Source of the DNA: Blepharisma stoltei ATCC 30299
Taxonomy: Eukaryota > Protista > Ciliophora
Assembly (NCBI GenBank): GCA_965603825.1
Contig: CBFDEM010000016.1
Coordinates: 248,001-312,000, forward strand
DNA: 64,000 bases
Reading direction: 5' to 3'
The notes under the pieces are model-generated. The model did not search any database, was not told where the DNA came from, and worked only from the letters and a program-made list of their open reading frames with translations. A program made the position numbers and the translations under genes. Position 1 is the stretch's first letter; each line of letters opens with the position of its first letter. This document shows positions 3,865-41,363 of this stretch, piece by piece.

Positions 3865-3867
3865 GAG

Positions 3868-3940
3868 TTCCGCATCCGGGACTCGAACCCGGGTCTTCAG
3901 GGTGAAGGCCTGATATCCTAACCAGCTAGACAAATGCGGA
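3868..3940 (-). tRNA. tRNA-Glu (UUC)
   Basis: Acceptor stem TCCGCAT/ATGCGGA, anticodon stem TCAGG/CCTGA, loop CCTTCAC, T-arm CCGGG-TTCGAGT-CCCGG, no encoded CCA. Confidence 0.93.
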
Positions 3941-21344: not shown

Positions 21345-22242
21345 ACTTATTTAAAATTTAGAAAGAAAATTACTGAAATTAGATTTAACACTAAAAGCAA
21401 TAGTACTTCTTAAAATCATCAAACTCTTATAAGCTACTTGCTTAAATAGCAGCTTATTGATAATTAAAGATAGTAATAAATAATCAAGCAAAAATAAAAA
21501 AAAATCATTTCAACTTCATCGGGTTTAAATTTTAATTGACTGATTAATTTTCTTACTTTGAAATATAGCAACTAGTATTTAAAAAAAAATATTTTCATTA
21601 ATGGGGATAGATTCATAATTTTAATATATTTATAAAATCTTTAGGAATTTTTATAAATATCTTTTATCGAAAATACTATATAAACTTAAATTATTCTATA
21701 TATAAAATAAGTGCATTTCTCCAGCTATGTGATGACTTTTCTTAATGCTCATATTTATTGAAATCCATTTTTTTTAAATTGTTTTAATATGGGATTTGAT
21801 CGAAAAATTATTAATCCTTATAAGTTTAAACTGGCTAATAATTGTCAGAATTCTTTCATCAATTCTAACACTTCAATTAAGCAGAAAATTATATAAAATT
21901 GATTATACTTATTTTCACTGAGAAAAAGTCTAAATCACATGGAAAAGGGTGAGACATTTTGCTTATCCTTTTTCAAAACTGATTTTATACTTTCAATATT
22001 TTTAACTATTTAAATATTATTTTCAGCTCAAAAGGAAATGACCCTCTTTCTTAGCTTATTGCTAAAGCGCTTTAAAGTAAAGCCTGATATAATTTCAAAT
22101 TATGGTGAAAGCTCATGTGAGTACATACTATTCCTGTTCATAAATGCGCCATATTCATATTTTTATCTCAAAATTTATATAATTAACTATATTTTCATGC
22201 AAGAGACACATTTATTTCTAATTCTTCTACAGTTATATAAGC

Positions 22243-24033
22243 ATGGCTGAATATTTTATTGACATCCCAAGTGATTATTGCTGCCCGATAACCGGTGAGC
22301 TAATGGAAGATCCAGTTTTAGCTCCAGACGGACAAAGTTATGAGCGAGCAGCGATTACCGCTTGATTCCAAAGACAAAAAACCAGCCCTTTAACCGGTGA
22401 GAATTTAAAAAGTACATTCTTAATTGATAACCATAGGCTAAGGGCAATAATTCAGAGTTTCAAGGAAACAATGCCCGAAATTCAAAGGGAAAATCAAGTT
22501 AAAAGGGATTTATTAGAGGCTATCAAAATAAGAGAAAATTACTTTGAAGACCACATTAGAAAAGGGCAAGAACAGATTGAAAGTATCAGCGATTTGCTAA
22601 GAGTCGAAAAAGAAAGAAACCTTTTATATGAAAGTAAGCTAGCTGCATATAAAATGACTATTAAAAGCCAAAATAATCAGATTGAGTCCTTGAAGGCAAA
22701 TTTAGAGCATTATGCCAAAAGATTTAAAGAAAAATACGATGAAGTAAAATGGCTAAATGAAGAATTGAGAAAAGCTCTCGATAATAAAAGTTTCCTAAAA
22801 GAAGAATTAAGCATTAAATCTGATGGACGAGCACAAATTAAAACAGAATCTGAAGCCCAAGATACTTGCAAAATGATTTGTGGATTGAGCCCAGAAATTG
22901 AGAAAATGATTGACTGTTTGATTAATGTTAAATTTAAAATACTTATAGATGAACTCATAAAAATAGAAACAGTTATTGGAAGGGATGATGATTCTAGAAG
23001 TCTGACTGTGTATCAGCTAAGAGAAATTAAAGTGTCCCTTTTTGACTTAAAATTAAATATTGAGAAGAGCAAAAGAGAGCTTGAGAATTGAAGGGAAGAG
23101 CTTCAATGAGAAACGCAAAAGAAATTCCAGAATTCTTCTGGAGAATACAGTAAAAACCGCCTATCCCTCCAAGAGATAAATGCAATAAATTTAGGCTCAG
23201 AAACTGAGCAATATTTAAGGAGATCTTGGTCAGCTGATATTTCTGCTTTTGATTTATCAACTAGTAGAGTTGATCAAATGATGCCTATTTATCTTATTGA
23301 GAAGGATAAGAATAGCAGGATCAATCTGATTGTTTATAATACAGAAAATCGTATAGAAGAAGCTAAATGAGTAAATCCTCCAGAATGAATAGATGAATGC
23401 TCATGTGCAGCTCAGCTTCCAACCCATGAAATCTTTTGCTTTGGTAAGGGCTATCCTCCCTCTGGTGTTTCACTAATAATTGATGTAAATCTGGGAGTTC
23501 GAATGCTCCCATCTGGAACTCCTTGCTCCTATTCTTCTGCTATTTATTTCAATAAAAATATTTATTGTTTCGGCGGAATAGATAGTTATAGCGACTTAAC
23601 TCTTTCAGAGAGATTTGATTTGAATGAAAATCGATGAATCAAATTGAGGCCATTGCCAAATTCCGATTTCTCTTGCAATTCTATAGTCTTTAATGGGGAT
23701 ATTTTGATTTCTGGAGCGATGTCTTGCAATCTTTTGCGATACTCAATTAATAACAATTCCTTCACAAGAATCCCTTTTAGATTTTCTGAAAATAAAAGAA
23801 AGATTTTGATAGATTTGGGAAAATTATACCTGATTGAATGTGGTAATGGGAAAATTTATGAAAGCAAATTTTGAGATGAGACTGTTTGGGAGCAGATAGG
23901 AAGCTCAATAATTAGTATGAAGTATAGCCAAGTGTATTGCTCATACAACAGAAGAGCTATCTTCATTGGATGCAGAAAGCCTGACAAATATTATAAGTTT
24001 AGTTTAGATGATAAAATAATGGTTAATCTTTAA
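22243..24033 (+). CDS. U-box E3 ligase with coiled coil and C-terminal Kelch-like repeats
   Basis: [27 protein letters not shown][W]...SPLT; IYCFGG...ERFDLNENR[W]; continuous 596-aa frame with TGA=Trp. Confidence 0.9.
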
Positions 24034-35456: not shown

Positions 35457-36099
35457 ATTTATTAATAAAAAAAAACAGCAGCTTCTAAAGAAATATTATT
35501 AGATTTAAATATAATTAAAAATTCCTTTCCAGCGATGGATTTCAAGTATTTCTTAATTCTATTAAAATAGAAGGGCTTAATAATTTTATTCTAATAGTTC
35601 ATTATCTTATAAAATTCACTCACTTAAAATTGCTGAGTGAGTATCTCCTTTTCTCTTGTCATAATTCAGGTGAAAAATCCAATATAAAGGTTTTTAAAAT
35701 ATAATATTATTAAAAGAAAATAATGCAAATATCATTATTTATAGATTTATAAGTATTAATTTAGTTACAGTTGAATTCTTTACTTAATTGCTATAAGATA
35801 GAATTCATCAAAATATAAACATAAAATGGAATTTTTACCCTCGTTAAAACTTTTAACTATAAACAAATTAATTTCTAATATATTACGTATATTGATCAAA
35901 TTTCTATTGAATTGTAAAATAATATTTCCAAAGTGATAAAGAAAACAATTCATATTTTTAGTTAGATACCAATAAAAAATTTTAGTCGAGTTTTTTTGTT
36001 TTCTTGAAAAATTTCATCAATCCATGAAAAGGCCATTAGCTTACTGGCTCGATTATAAACAATGTACAATATTATATCATAATATCTGGTGACAATTCC

Positions 36100-36367
36100 A
36101 AACTAAATATCATAAATTATTGTTTTTCCATCCAAGGGCTTTGAAAATATTTGCATTCCTCTTTGAGTATTAGCGCAGATGATGTTTTAATTCTTTTTGG
36201 ATATCTTAATTTTCATCTTCTAACTTTTTACCAGCAAAAATGAGTCCTTGTGAGATGGAGGAATCCCTTCTTTATTTGATTTTAGCTTATACATTATCAA
36301 TAGTGTCTGAAGATCCAACGCCGAAGGTGGTAGTTTTTCCAGTCAACATTTCATAGAAAATTTGAAT
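36100..36367 (-). pseudogene. decayed (poly)ubiquitin gene, one full and one partial unit
   Basis: IQIFYEMLTGKTTTFGVGSSDTIDNV*AKIK / KEGIPPS / LIFAGKKLED / DIQKE, then RG-MQIF..LDGKTI; no start ATG, stops and frameshifts. Confidence 0.85.
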
Positions 36368-36632
36368 ATTTAAAGTTTAAATTTGATATTTTAATCTCAG
36401 TTATAATTTAATTTAAGTCTTCTAACGCTTTAAGCACTTCTCAATGGTGAGTAAGTCAAAAGGTAATTATTTATTAATGCCTAATTTATTTGATAAATTC
36501 TGAATGATTCAAGTTTGTAATTTTTTTTAAAGGCATTAAAAATTTATTTTTTTATTTGTCTTAATTTTAAATAGAGAAATATAAATGTATTTAACGATAA
36601 TCTTAAAATATAAAAATTAATCATTTTACCGA

Positions 36633-37655
36633 TTAATTATGGCTAAGCTTTTCATTTACCAAATTTTCGAGTTGCTTCAATTCCTTTTCTTGCAAGTCTA
36701 TTAATTCTTCTCTCTCTGCTAAGCACACTTTTATTTGCTCCAATGTATCATTATTCATAGTCCAAGTCAACACAATATCAGCTACGCTAAGTGCAGCTCC
36801 AGCTGCTCCAAGTATTTTTGCCCCAGGTCCAATCCTCATTAATTTAGGAAAGTTTATTGCCTTTGCAGCATTTGCAGTTTTTGCCGAATTATAAGCTGCG
36901 TTTGCCGCTCTCGCCGCTTTAAAATGATTATAAGCTTTGATGAAAATCGTCGTATTCTTAATTTTACTAGTCATCAATAAAGCTTGTGCAGCTCCTTTTG
37001 TAGCTTCAATAGATTTATCAAGTCTTATAAGCGTAAAATAAAATTTATTAGCAGCGTTCTCTTCATTTTCTAATATTTTTTTCATCTGGGCCAGTCTGTC
37101 TTTTTCTATGAAATGCTGAGCTATTGAGGTTCCTATTGATGTAAGACCTCCAGCTACTAATGCTAAGGCTCCAATCCAAGGAAAAGGCGTAAAAAGCAAC
37201 GCTGTTCCTATGACAGTTCCTGCATTTCCAGAAGTATTAGAAATTTTACAATTCAAGAGATTCTGCTCTAAATCATATTTTAAGCTTATAAGAGCGTCGA
37301 TAGATTTTCTGATGCTGCTTATATAGTCTTTTCTTGAGGCTATGTGCTCATATAAAGAACTCATCAGGCGCTCTAGCAGCTGATTGTTGCCATTTTCAGG
37401 GCGACGATTTAGGGGTTGATTGCGGATTTGCTCTTTGTAGTCGCTAATTAGAGCTTTTATATTGTAGTTTGGGGTGAGATTTCGGCTTGAGAGCTCTTCT
37501 CCTGTTAATGGGTTGGCATTGCTTATTTCCATTCATGCCGCAATGGCTGCTCTCTCATAGGTGTGACCATCTGCTGCAATCACAGGGTCATCCATAAGCT
37601 CTTGAGTTATCGGGCATAGATACTCATTTGGCATATACTGATCAGACCCTTCCAT
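36633..37655 (-). CDS. U-box E3 ligase fused to an apolipoprotein-L-like helical/membrane domain
   Basis: EYLCPITQELMDDPVIAADGHTYERAAIAA[W]...NPLT...PNYNIK (U-box); NCKISNTSGNAGTVIGTALLFTPF...GGLTSIGTSIAQHF and GAALSVADIV + C-terminal zipper (ApoL-like). Confidence 0.8.
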
Positions 37656-37834
37656 TAACAATTTATTAAGTATATGCATAAATTTATTGGCAAGATTAGT
37701 TTAAAAAATACTTATAATTTTTAGCCATTTATTTTGATAATCCTAATAATTTAGTAAGATATAATAAATTATTTTTATTTTCTCTTTTATGATTAATTAT
37801 GCAGCTTGAAGAATTATTATAAAACACTTTGACT

Positions 37835-38467
37835 TTAAATCATCATTATTGTGCTTAAATTCTTGACATTATATTGCGAAATCCGTTTATGACTATCATT
37901 CAACTCTTGTAAAGTAAAAATAAGCCTTTCACTTTCAGATGGAATTTTTTTAAAGATTTTTCGTTTTAATTCTTCTACTGTAGCATTATCTTTGATTTTT
38001 ATTTTCTCCTTTTTTCGACTGGTTAAGTCTTGCAAATAAACATAAAAGGCATTTTTGTCTTCTTTTTTTGGCTTTCTGGATTTTTCTTCTTTCGAATCAC
38101 TGATTTTTTCTTTCAGAGTTTCATTTTGTGTTTTTAATTTTTCATTTTCTTCAGTAAGGCTTGTGTTTCTTTTAAGCAACTTTTTCACCAATTTTTTCTC
38201 TGAAGTTCTCCGTTTCATTATCATTGGAAGTGTTTCAGAATTTTGCTCTATGAAATTACTATTACGTAATTTCCGAGCAAATGGATCCTCAAATTCAATC
38301 ATTTTATCACGCTTTTTAACCCACTTAGAAATAGTGCTATGAGCAATATTGTATTTTTCAGCTAAATCTCTTAAAGTTGCGTTTGTATCATTATACTCGT
38401 CAACTATGCTAAGTTTATCTGCAATTGTGAGTCACCTCCTTGGATGCTTTAAAGGAAATAGATCCAT
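37835..38467 (-). CDS. CENP-B/Pogo-type HTH - coiled coil - ubiquitin-like domain protein
   Basis: ATG 38467 in frame via one TGA; RR[W]LTIADKLSIV...LRDLAEKYNIAHSTISKWVKKRD; C-terminal FYVYLQDLTSRK..IKIKDNATVEELKRKI...ERLIF..QELND..ISQYNVKNLSTIMMI. Confidence 0.82.
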
Positions 38468-38640
38468 TGGTCAATCACGATTGTATTAAATATAAATAAT
38501 CCCCCTGGTTTGAACAAATAATTTAATCTGCTTTAATTTTATTTTTAATTAAATGATAAAAATTTCACTTTAAACCATGGTAAATTCATATTACACAAAT
38601 AAAAAGCATTAATAAAATTTCTAATGAAAGTATTTATGGC

Positions 38641-39834
38641 TTAGTTTATTACTCCCGCGTCCATTAGGTACCCAATGCAGTCATCATAAGTATTATATCT
38701 GCTCACTGCTTTATAAAGTTGCATTTTAGCAGCCACTTCTGGGTATTCCCTCTTTATCATTTCAGCTAACTGTATTTTAGCTTCTCCCAGTGTTACTAAA
38801 GCTTCATTAACTTTTTGGATTGCTGGGTCAATTACTGGAGCTCTGAACCCTGGAAAGGGACATGACATTGATAATCCTTTGCTGTTCTCTTCATTTTTTT
38901 CCTCTTCTGACCCCTCATCTTCCTCATCTTCATCTAAATTCAATAATGAATATGCAATGCTCACCACATCATGATCCTTCATCACTCTTATGCTAATGCT
39001 GCTCAGGTTCTCAATAGATATCTCCAACTCGTGGGTTTCTCCAGGCTGCAGGGTTTTCCCAACAGGATATGACTGAGAAGTTTCATTACAAAATACATAG
39101 AGATTATCTAAGTTCTCATTCGAAGAATTAGCAATTGTGCAGCACAAATTGTCGTTGTCTCCCAATTCTGCACCCTTGAATTCAACCTTCATTATTGGAA
39201 ACAGCTCGGAGACTGGCCTTCCATCAACTTTTGCAATGATGTGATTTCCATAGTAATCAAAACTGGGGTTAAGTTTACCTAGATGCCTTTTTATGTTAAT
39301 TTCTGGCTCGAGCAGTCTGATTTCAGCTATTTTTTCGTTCGATTCTGATATGAAAAATTCGACTTTTCGGAAATAATCTTGAGTTGCATTTTCTACACAA
39401 AGGACCCAATTGAGATTGTCTTCATCGTCCTTTTTACAGTAGAATCTAAGGATGCTGACTTTAGAATTCTCGTCTATTTTTTCTTTTGGAAAAGCTACCT
39501 TTGCCTTAGCCTTCAGCATATTTGTAGATTCATGCAACTTTTTGAGTGCCTCAATTGCAGGAGCTAGGATAGAAGGATCTGAAAAGTCTGAGTAGGCTTG
39601 GCCCTGCGTGCATTCAAGTTGGCAATTCAAGGATTGCAGCATCTCTGACAGCTGGCGATTGACAAAGCTAGCGTGCTCATTAAGGTTATTTGATTCATTT
39701 ATAGCAAGCAGGGAAGAATCCTCATAAAGCTGATCAAGTGCTAATTTAAATGCAGACTGCAGTTCTGGTGATAGCTCATCAAATAATCACTCAGAGTATT
39801 TTTCAAGAATTTCGGGATTGACAGGTTGAGCCAT
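38641..39834 (-). CDS. hypothetical protein, beta-sandwich-like middle, acidic linker, possible CUE/UBA-like tail
   Basis: ATG 39834 in frame via TGA with ORF 38641-39642; domain guesses are by eye only. Confidence 0.7.
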
Positions 39835-39848
39835 GTTAATTATAAAAT

Positions 39849-41363
39849 TTAATTATTTGGGATTTTTTCAATATAATCTTTCCATAGAATTCTTCCAGGC
39901 CTATGAAGTTCATTGGGCGGATAAGCTCTTTGTGCATTAACAACTGGAGTTTCATACTCATCTTTTTTGTTGATTAAGTTGCTTGCTAAGCATTTGTAAG
40001 CTTGAACAAGCCGCTCTACTTGATAATCGCCTTCTTTTAATTGATTTAGCTCATCCATATCTATCTTTTTAGCTGTGTTAAGCTTATATGTAAAATCGAT
40101 TATCCCTTGTAAAGGCTCTGTTATTGTTCTAGATTGATGATGGATTAAATAAATGATTAATATTGTAGTCACTAATGAGCAACACAATGTAATTCCTATA
40201 AACAATGACCCTTGCTCTTTTATTTTGGATTTTGCATCTTCTTTATATATCATGATGTCAGCCTCATTTACCAACAGCATAATTATATAATACCAAGTTC
40301 TCCCTTCTGTCGCACTTTCTTCATCAGAAATATCAATTGTTGTTTCTAATGATGTAGAAGCTACTCTGTAGATATTGTCATTTTCTATAAGATAGTTAAC
40401 ACCGCTTGCATTCTTTTGAATATCGCTTCAAAAATTTTGATAAGCAATATCATCCATGGACTTGTAGCTGTATTTTCAAAACCCGTACTCACCGCTTCTG
40501 AAAATATCTCCATTTCAATATATAATTGATACGTCTCCATGGCCTAAATATTGTAAATCAAGCTTTTTAAACATGGCTAAAATTGCTATGTCTACTGACA
40601 TTGTTCCTATCTTCTTCCCATCATTATCTACAAGAGAATAAACCAAAGACGCGATTGATTGGCCATTTCCTAGCGTATCATTATAAGCTGTAGTCCTTAC
40701 ATCGTTATAATCGTTTTCTGCATAAGATTGATATCAGACTTCATTTTTCGGGTCATAATCCTCTGGGAGTTCTGATCCAGGATACACAATAATAAAATTA
40801 GCATCTTCAAAATACATAAGATACCTTATAGTAGTTTGATTTGCTAAATATCTGATATTGCTTCATAGATAGCTAAGTGTTGATGATCGATTTAACATTT
40901 TTTGATCAACTGTCCCTAATGGAAAATAAGCTGAATACTCAAAGCTTACGTTTCTATTCCCATAAACATCTTCATAAACTTGCAGAGAAGACTCTGGGAT
41001 TTCTTGAAACTGCAAACTTTTTAAGTCTTCAAGAGCGAAAGTTGATTCATGATATGAGAAAATTAGCATATTGTTCATCATTCGTAAGAAGATTTCTGTT
41101 GTGGACATTTCAGCTGCTAATGCAGCCCCACCTGTGTAAATCAGAGAAATTAAGTCAGAGCTGGATTGTGTGTTTCGGGTTTCGTCGATTTGGAGAACAG
41201 TTTGGTTTAGTAGAAGTAAGGTATTTAATAGAACAAGAGTAATTATCATAGCAAGAATCACTGCTATTGAAAAAATATAACAAAAAAGCATTTGTCGCCG
41301 AATTGGTCAAGATTTTGCAATGCTAATTAATTCAGCCCAGAAATTTTTGATCATGTTGCACAT
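39849..41363 (-). CDS. TM-dCache-TM-HAMP sensor-like membrane protein
   Basis: Continuous 504-aa frame; VYPG...YDPKNEV[W]Y...AYND...IGTMSVDI; TM2 followed by ITEPLQGI...QVERLVQAY. Confidence 0.8.

Follow-up and report, generated by a model that had tools for sequence, protein, structure and literature searches.

The stretch of DNA analysed here (hereafter the window) comprises 64,000 nucleotides of Blepharisma stoltei ATCC 30299, positions 248,001 to 312,000 of contig CBFDEM010000016.1. Its gene at 36633-37655, on the minus strand, encodes a protein in which a complete U-box is joined to a C-terminal domain (residues 90-340) resembling apolipoprotein L (ApoL). The gene is intact, apparently transcribed and under purifying selection. 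We consider the C-terminal domain ApoL-like, and with good though not full confidence we regard it as most likely a remote homologue of the ApoL family PF05461, not a canonical member of it. For the protein as a whole, we favour with some reserve the interpretation that it is a cytosol-facing, membrane-inserted E3 ubiquitin ligase.

On the minus strand the track of open reading frames (ORFs) shows a 299-residue ORF at 36633-37532 and, upstream in the same frame, a 48-residue ORF that ends at the TGA at 37533-37535, the only in-frame TGA of the gene. When this TGA is read as Trp, the frame gains 41 N-terminal codons (40 codons plus the TGA codon), exactly as the original prediction had claimed, and its coordinates are likewise exact. 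The read-through product is identical to P0001, a public protein of 340 residues from the B. stoltei assembly GCA_914767885.1, which starts at the ATG at 37655. A further in-frame ATG at 37679 provides an alternative start with 8 additional residues, and paralogues start at the position equivalent to the ATG at 37655. The U-box said to be hidden from the ORF track by the TGA is indeed there: after retranslation it is complete and gives a single Pfam match (E 2.2e-19), and over the whole domain the protein lies far above the gathering score of PF04564 (69.8 bits against a cut-off of 21.4). The motifs of the module, namely CPI, DPV, G-TYER, I..W and L.PN..L, are all there. Searched separately, the piece 5' of the TGA matches model positions 2-32 with E 4.6e-11 and the piece 3' of it matches positions 40-71 with E 0.021. 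Both pieces match adjoining parts of PF04564, and therefore the TGA is located at the conserved Trp of the U-box.

It could be argued that the fusion is an annotation artefact, in which the TGA is a true stop and the sequence is either a 48-residue U-box fragment followed by a separate 299-residue gene, or a pseudogene; in fact the frame is split under the standard or bacterial code. We regard the probability of this explanation as close to nil. The TGA falls exactly on the conserved Trp, between two halves that match adjoining parts of the U-box model, and TGA behaves as a sense codon across the window, where ORFs of at least 150 residues sum to 12,433 residues and to 20,450 once TGA is allowed. 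Moreover, the paralogues keep the same architecture with either TGG or TGA at the residue-41 site; the one at C26:72705-73679 is entirely free of TGA codons and carries Trp at the equivalent position. RNA-like contigs also cross the TGA codon, and the selection on the gene is purifying. UGA as Trp in Blepharisma is reportedly a topic of the preprint bioRxiv 10.1101/2023.10.09.561518.

The contigs came from four runs of one study, whose RNA nature was only guessed, and they were examined over 35500-40000. They lie on three gene bodies only, nothing falls in the intergenic bins 35500-36556 and 37765-37915, and adjacent genes differ in depth by as much as about 100-fold, a pattern that fits RNA rather than DNA. 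The TGA is covered in runs X1 (37324-37612), X3 (37324-37611) and X2 (37078-37651). The X2 contig reaches from the start of the U-box to just past the hydrophobic hairpin of the C-terminal domain and joins both halves, providing the link between them at the level of RNA-like contigs on which the original prediction depended. Contig depth on the gene is low, 5-25 against 100-1600 for its neighbours. As for selection, the ratio of nonsynonymous to synonymous substitution rates (dN/dS) against older paralogues is 0.17-0.27, for the U-box and the C-terminal domain alike, and in the youngest pairs it is 0.46-0.78. Differences between the RNA-like contigs and the window occur at 37404 (A>G, in all four runs) and 37513 (T>C, in three runs) and are denser in the neighbouring genes, over 38700-39800; all of them probably reflect variation between alleles or strains and not editing.

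The U-box is the E2-recruiting module of ubiquitin ligases and works with cytosolic E2 enzymes. Judged by its sequence, the N-terminal U-box of P0001 is such a module, and ligase activity is predicted for it. A complete U-box with the usual motifs is what P0001 has in common with the U-box E3 ligases (CHIP, Prp19, plant PUB; PF04564). Known U-box proteins carry TPR, WD40, ARM, kinase or ankyrin modules as partners, and P0005, for example, combines two U-boxes with ankyrin repeats; in P0001, by contrast, the partner is a predicted membrane-inserting ApoL-like domain. At least 23 U-box matches were counted in the genome. A second U-box-bearing ORF of the window, of about 603 residues, lies on the plus strand at 22222-24033, with its U-box at 22264-22362.

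The features of residues 90-340 that the original prediction had listed were all located, namely an amphipathic helix at about 90-143, the FTPF hairpin, an Ala-rich stretch (residues 246-266), GAALSVADIV, which falls within the hydrophobic stretch 277-300, and a C-terminal amphipathic helix (Table 1). The hairpin, residues 145-180, is rich in Gly, Thr, Ser and Pro and contains no acidic residue. We modelled the protein with AlphaFold2 from a 20-sequence alignment, with a mean predicted local distance difference test score (pLDDT) of 68.9. In the model, helices 90-153 and 159-219 form a long helical hairpin with the hydrophobic stretch at its tip (pLDDT 82-96), followed by a low-confidence helix 223-264 and by helices 279-299 and 303-339 (pLDDT 72-93). 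T141, G162, G169 and T172 are invariant in the same alignment, and conservation is at least 90% for G143, F155, T156, P157, S173, G175, D293 and W298. The N-terminus has no hydrophobic stretch, and no signal peptide was found by hydropathy.

Table 1. Features of the U-box/ApoL-like gene and its surroundings, in window positions.
Feature	Position	Strand	Basis or remark
Complete intron-free coding sequence	36633..37655	minus	340 codons + TAA stop at 36633-36635; identical to P0001
U-box, residues 9-77	37425..37631	minus	PF04564, 69.8 bits, E 2.2e-19, profile 2-71 of 73
In-frame TGA, residue 41, read as Trp	37533..37535	minus	Conserved Trp of U-box
Long amphipathic helix, residues 90-143, ending in family motif CKISNT-GN	37227..37388	minus	AlphaFold2 helix 90-153 (pLDDT 83-96), amphipathicity, motif conservation
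Hydrophobic Gly/Ala/Thr-rich helical hairpin, residues 145-180, turn at FTPFP	37116..37223	minus	Kyte-Doolittle peak 1.74; AlphaFold2 helix-turn-helix 90-153/159-219
Helical linker including Ala-rich stretch, residues 181-276	36828..37115	minus	Weakly conserved; pLDDT 36-49 over 228-276
Second hydrophobic helix, residues 277-300, with near-invariant Asp293 (codon 36777-36779) and Trp298	36756..36827	minus	Kyte-Doolittle peak 1.60; D293, W298 in at least 90% of sequences
C-terminal amphipathic helix / leucine zipper, residues 303-339	36639..36749	minus	AlphaFold2, pLDDT 78-93; top hydrophobic moment of protein
Insertion site in coding sequence	37077..37087	.	CAJZBQ010000016.1 carries 420 extra bases here, direct repeat of about 10 bp flanking
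Upstream co-oriented neighbour: CENP-B-type helix-turn-helix + ubiquitin-like domain	37835..38467	minus	Pfam; one paralogue in genome

The ApoL assignment was drawn from profile matches across the family and from language-model neighbours. With PF05461 at E values up to 1, nine of the 29 family members or pieces scanned gave matches, all of them sub-threshold, the best reaching 19.6 bits (E 6.6e-4). No other Pfam family was matched in the C-terminal domain of more than two members, so that ApoL alone recurs. The register is equal in all nine matches (six proteins and three exon pieces), with CKISNTVGN at model positions of about 85-93, and the matches begin at model position of about 40-65. 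In P0027, residues 27-243 align with positions 62-282 of the 298-position model in one whole-length alignment (E 0.59). Members with recurring ApoL matches are only 22-40% identical to each other. In the ESM Atlas, 28 of the 30 clusters neighbouring residues 85-340 carry PF05461 (score 0.94, 211 of 256 features common), and for P0049, a family member with 25% identity, all 30 clusters are ApoL (score 0.95, 214 of 256 features); in calibration, feature counts of that size corresponded to true family members in nine of ten cases.

The domain also follows the known APOL proteins in its layout. A flexible hydrophobic transmembrane hairpin, the membrane-insertion domain, is a major characteristic of APOLs (PMC11726835) and consists of their first two transmembrane helices (PMC8358165). 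Farther on, a hydrophobic pore-lining C-terminal helix of the APOLs bears a conserved Asp and precedes a leucine zipper (PMC8358165, PMC8446801); this Asp, D348, lies in the pore-lining region 335-355, is kept by all APOLs and functions in channel gating (PMC8358165). The order of elements in human APOL2, APOL3 and APOL6 is the same as in residues 90-340, that is, helices, hydrophobic hairpin, linker, Asp-bearing hydrophobic helix and leucine zipper. The counterpart of D348 would be the near-invariant D293 in helix 277-300, which is followed by helix 303-339, an equivalence given by collinearity and one weak alignment (that of P0027). APOLs with an uncharged hairpin insert without acid pH (PMC8358165), and the hairpin of APOL3-5 is acid-free like residues 145-180 (PMC8358165, PMC11726835). 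Human intracellular APOLs and P0001 are also alike in having no signal peptide.

Several observations weigh against reading the gene as a fusion with a true ApoL domain. P0001 and all the Blepharisma copies have no PF05461 match even at E 10, and no family member reaches the gathering score of 25.9 bits. The family members are mutually related, so the repeated weak ApoL matches are not independent, and a hairpin of such biased composition can make weak profile and language-model similarities look stronger than they are. A family profile run against the PDB sequences found no APOL chain; Foldseek on the PDB gave nothing below E 0.03 and only generic helical bundles, as did structure comparison by VIA-align, where the scope of these structure searches was set by the APOLs in the PDB, which are the N-terminal domains of APOL1/2 only. 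The N-terminus of APOL1/2 is a four-helix bundle of non-classical type (PMC8316464); P0001, unlike these proteins, has no such bundle, and only about 55 residues (one long helix, 90-143) precede its hairpin, with the U-box in front. As for the joining of the two halves, the contigs cannot prove a single transcript, the RNA identity of the runs being guessed. In addition, the similarity of the Blepharisma family to human APOLs is under the Pfam threshold.

The original prediction had described the layout of this domain as characteristic of ApoL proteins, and this was upheld in part. The layout, the recurring sub-threshold PF05461 matches and the language-model neighbours speak for it, but the protein itself matches the U-box family PF04564 in Pfam and not ApoL PF05461. 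The structural comparison, with the AlphaFold2 model and Foldseek, told little either way, yielding generic helical bundles and no APOL match. Two other candidates were considered and rejected. The coiled coil of Get1 was the best match of the profile search in the PDB (E about 1.5e-3), over the D..W..N helix and the zipper, and was judged coiled-coil similarity, not homology. The Senescence domain PF06911 matched the distant relative P0158 alone and did not recur among the members scanned. P0158 (332 residues, from a Logan assembly) keeps an LLFTPL hairpin and an SVADxVxSW helix, and its middle part is longer and Ala-rich; it has a near-threshold match to PF06911 (24.3 bits against 24.6, E 3.4e-5), and ApoL is not matched.

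If P0001 is indeed a cytosol-facing, membrane-inserted ligase, it would be synthesized in the cytosol, and its hairpin, being acid-free, would insert at neutral pH into a membrane that it reaches from the cytosolic side, as reported for APOL3-5. The U-box would then stay on the cytosolic face and ubiquitinate proteins of that membrane, or P0001 itself. We infer this topology because there is no signal peptide and because a U-box needs cytosolic E2~ubiquitin; membrane insertion, ligase activity and the choice of target membrane are likewise predicted from the sequence. U-boxes usually dimerize (CHIP, Prp19), and together with the zipper this would favour oligomers on the membrane.

Two other explanations accept the fusion and give the C-terminal domain a different role or origin. 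P0001 might be a regulated lytic effector whose ApoL-like domain acts as a cation channel, pore or membrane-dissolving module against phagosomal or intracellular microbes, symbionts or organelles; the U-box could then limit the dose of the protein by self-ubiquitination, or coat the attacked membrane with ubiquitin. We consider this unlikely, yet several facts suit it: the near-invariant Asp293 would correspond to D348, the channel-gating residue of APOLs (PMC8358165), small polar residues are kept in the hairpin, dN/dS rises to 0.46-0.78 in the youngest pairs, transcript-like depth is low, and the family stands in tandem arrays both in Blepharisma, where copies are gained and lost, and in other eukaryotes, as is typical of conflict genes. 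Alternatively, the domain might not be ApoL at all but an unrelated or convergent monotopic hairpin anchor, tethering a U-box ligase to the endoplasmic reticulum, lipid droplets or another organelle. Animals have hairpin-anchored ubiquitin factors of this sort, such as AUP1 and UBXD8. All the ApoL matches are sub-threshold, a six-frame genome scan with PF05461 was empty at 36633-37655 (two unrelated weak matches with E of about 0.6 were found elsewhere), the structure searches gave no specific fold, and P0158 approaches the threshold of Senescence (E 3.4e-5) and not of ApoL. Such an anchor nevertheless seems rather improbable to us: ApoL alone recurs, in one register, across members that are 22-40% identical; in two language-model queries nearly all neighbours were ApoL clusters, with over 210 of 256 features common; and the conservation of the pre-hairpin motif, the Asp/Trp helix and the zipper exceeds the needs of a simple anchor.

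Beyond the membrane-inserted ligase, a more specific role can be proposed with little confidence, that of a one-chain effector of cell-autonomous defence, in which the ApoL-like module would permeabilize an ingested or intracellular microbe, or its vacuole, and the U-box would coat the same surface with ubiquitin. In human cells, cytosolic bacteria receive a ubiquitin coat from RNF213/LUBAC and are attacked by APOL3. The two modules of P0001 may be likened to this arrangement, in which a ligase and an ApoL-type membrane-active protein meet at one target membrane from the cytosol. However, human RNF213/LUBAC and APOL3 are separate proteins of an interferon-induced pathway, whereas in B. stoltei both modules are in one chain.

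We then looked at the relatives of the gene. Within B. stoltei there are 12 further matches to the domain, all on contig C26 at 71.4-87.6 kb. With TGA as Trp this tandem array holds nine U-box and 11 domain segments; five genes with U-box plus domain are intact (322-327 residues), and the others are split, truncated or contain stops. The gene at 36633-37655 is the outlying member of a B. stoltei family of about 12 copies. Word-indexed protein searches returned the kin of the query almost exclusively, or the query alone, and no bona fide ApoL sequences. An exhaustive search of 1.84 billion representatives with the full-length query listed 150 matches, most of them plain U-box proteins, and about 17 of those listed were relatives of the C-terminal domain. 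Only P0003 and P0002 among them reach beyond the domain. P0003 matches in one stretch from the U-box through the domain (residues 8-332), and its NCBI name is B. stoltei; P0002 covers residues 56-334 with 52% identity, has the length of the C26:71479 copy counted from after its TGA, and is taken for a Blepharisma paralogue. The other listed relatives, about 15, match residues from about 100 to 335 only and are stand-alone proteins of 200-270 residues. In the data searched, no U-box-ApoL fusion was found outside the B. stoltei family.

The stand-alone ApoL-like proteins (about 240 residues; P0006, P0017, P0027, P0049, P0102 and P0146; loci L021-L036) contain the same domain end to end, with 22-38% identity, and share the motifs CKISNTVGN, LLFTP and SxxDIVxTW with B. 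stoltei. Their contigs are gene-dense eukaryotic DNA, and tandem arrays are frequent (two copies in L022, seven in L023 and two in L024); within the contig sequence examined, no U-box was found near them. Twelve further metagenome loci have the exact CKISNTVGN motif; their contigs are eukaryotic, low in GC and up to 602 kb long. In at least three of these genes (L026:2743-3699, L028:2686-3717 and L029:308-1312), which were searched exon by exon, a GT-AG intron of about 55 nt follows GSATSLG. L022 is a contig of a related heterotrich, with an MKT1-like protein 69% identical to that of B. stoltei. At L022:3135-4697, two stand-alone ApoL-like genes and a RabGAP gene lie between orthologues, and in B. 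stoltei (G000:C33:279600-283700) the same orthologues stand about 2.5 kb apart, with none of those genes in the interval. A maximum-likelihood tree placed the 15 non-Blepharisma sequences in one group (support 82/78), with a poorly resolved backbone, and those Blepharisma copies that lack a U-box are nested among the copies that have one. This grouping and nesting fit a single fusion followed by tandem birth and death but are not proof of it. In the Blepharisma lineage a stand-alone ApoL-like gene was probably fused to a U-box on a single occasion, and tandem duplication with frequent gene death followed.

No description of a U-box-ApoL fusion was known to the original prediction, and the literature search likewise turned up none: in full text there was no paper tying ApoL to ciliates, protists or U-boxes, and no ApoL with a ubiquitin-ligase domain. 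NCBI and UniRef give the B. stoltei paralogues no label more specific than unnamed protein product or U-box domain-containing protein. What appears to be new is the occurrence of a divergent ApoL-like family beyond its usual setting in animals, and its joining in one lineage to a U-box. To our knowledge, work on ApoL has been almost wholly mammalian, dealing with trypanosome lysis, kidney disease and the killing of cytosolic bacteria. A divergent family present in ciliates and in further eukaryotes, microbial or small, would widen the view of the origin of ApoL and of its core biochemical role, and an ApoL-like domain welded to a ligase would be a natural clue that ApoL-type insertion and ubiquitination operate on the same surface. 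Moreover, the compact intron-free protein makes hairpin insertion, the conserved Asp and E3 activity jointly testable. If the defence role is true, the ubiquitin-plus-ApoL logic of human cytosolic immunity would also exist in a unicellular eukaryote, and the origin of ApoL would lie beyond animals.

The gene is preceded by a co-oriented gene for a helix-turn-helix and ubiquitin-like protein (Table 1), of which exactly two copies exist in the genome, each upstream of and co-oriented with a U-box/ApoL-like locus. The paralogue is at C26:66116-66742, 4.7 kb upstream of the array and in the same relative order; a 908-residue ORF and an N-myristoyltransferase-like ORF, assigned by sequence reading, lie between the two. 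Since the sole paralogue is found at the C26 array in the same order, the neighbour pair was duplicated together, and the pairing may reflect functional linkage or plain synteny. The only tRNA gene of the window is that for tRNA-Glu (anticodon TTC), at 3867-3940 on the minus strand.

CAJZBQ010000016.1, a second public NCBI record for the same contig, is collinear with the window and carries its insert in the coding sequence at L020:8580-8999, 420 bp with 42% GC, flanked by a repeat of about 10 bp, GATGAAAAAA. The flanks also contain shorter extra segments, among them one of 70 bp at L020:7847-7916. The extra segments of this contig are probably germline-limited eliminated sequences. Contig 10 of run X2 (653 letters) fits the window up to 37078, exactly the insert junction, with 79 letters over, and it may derive from an insert-retaining molecule.
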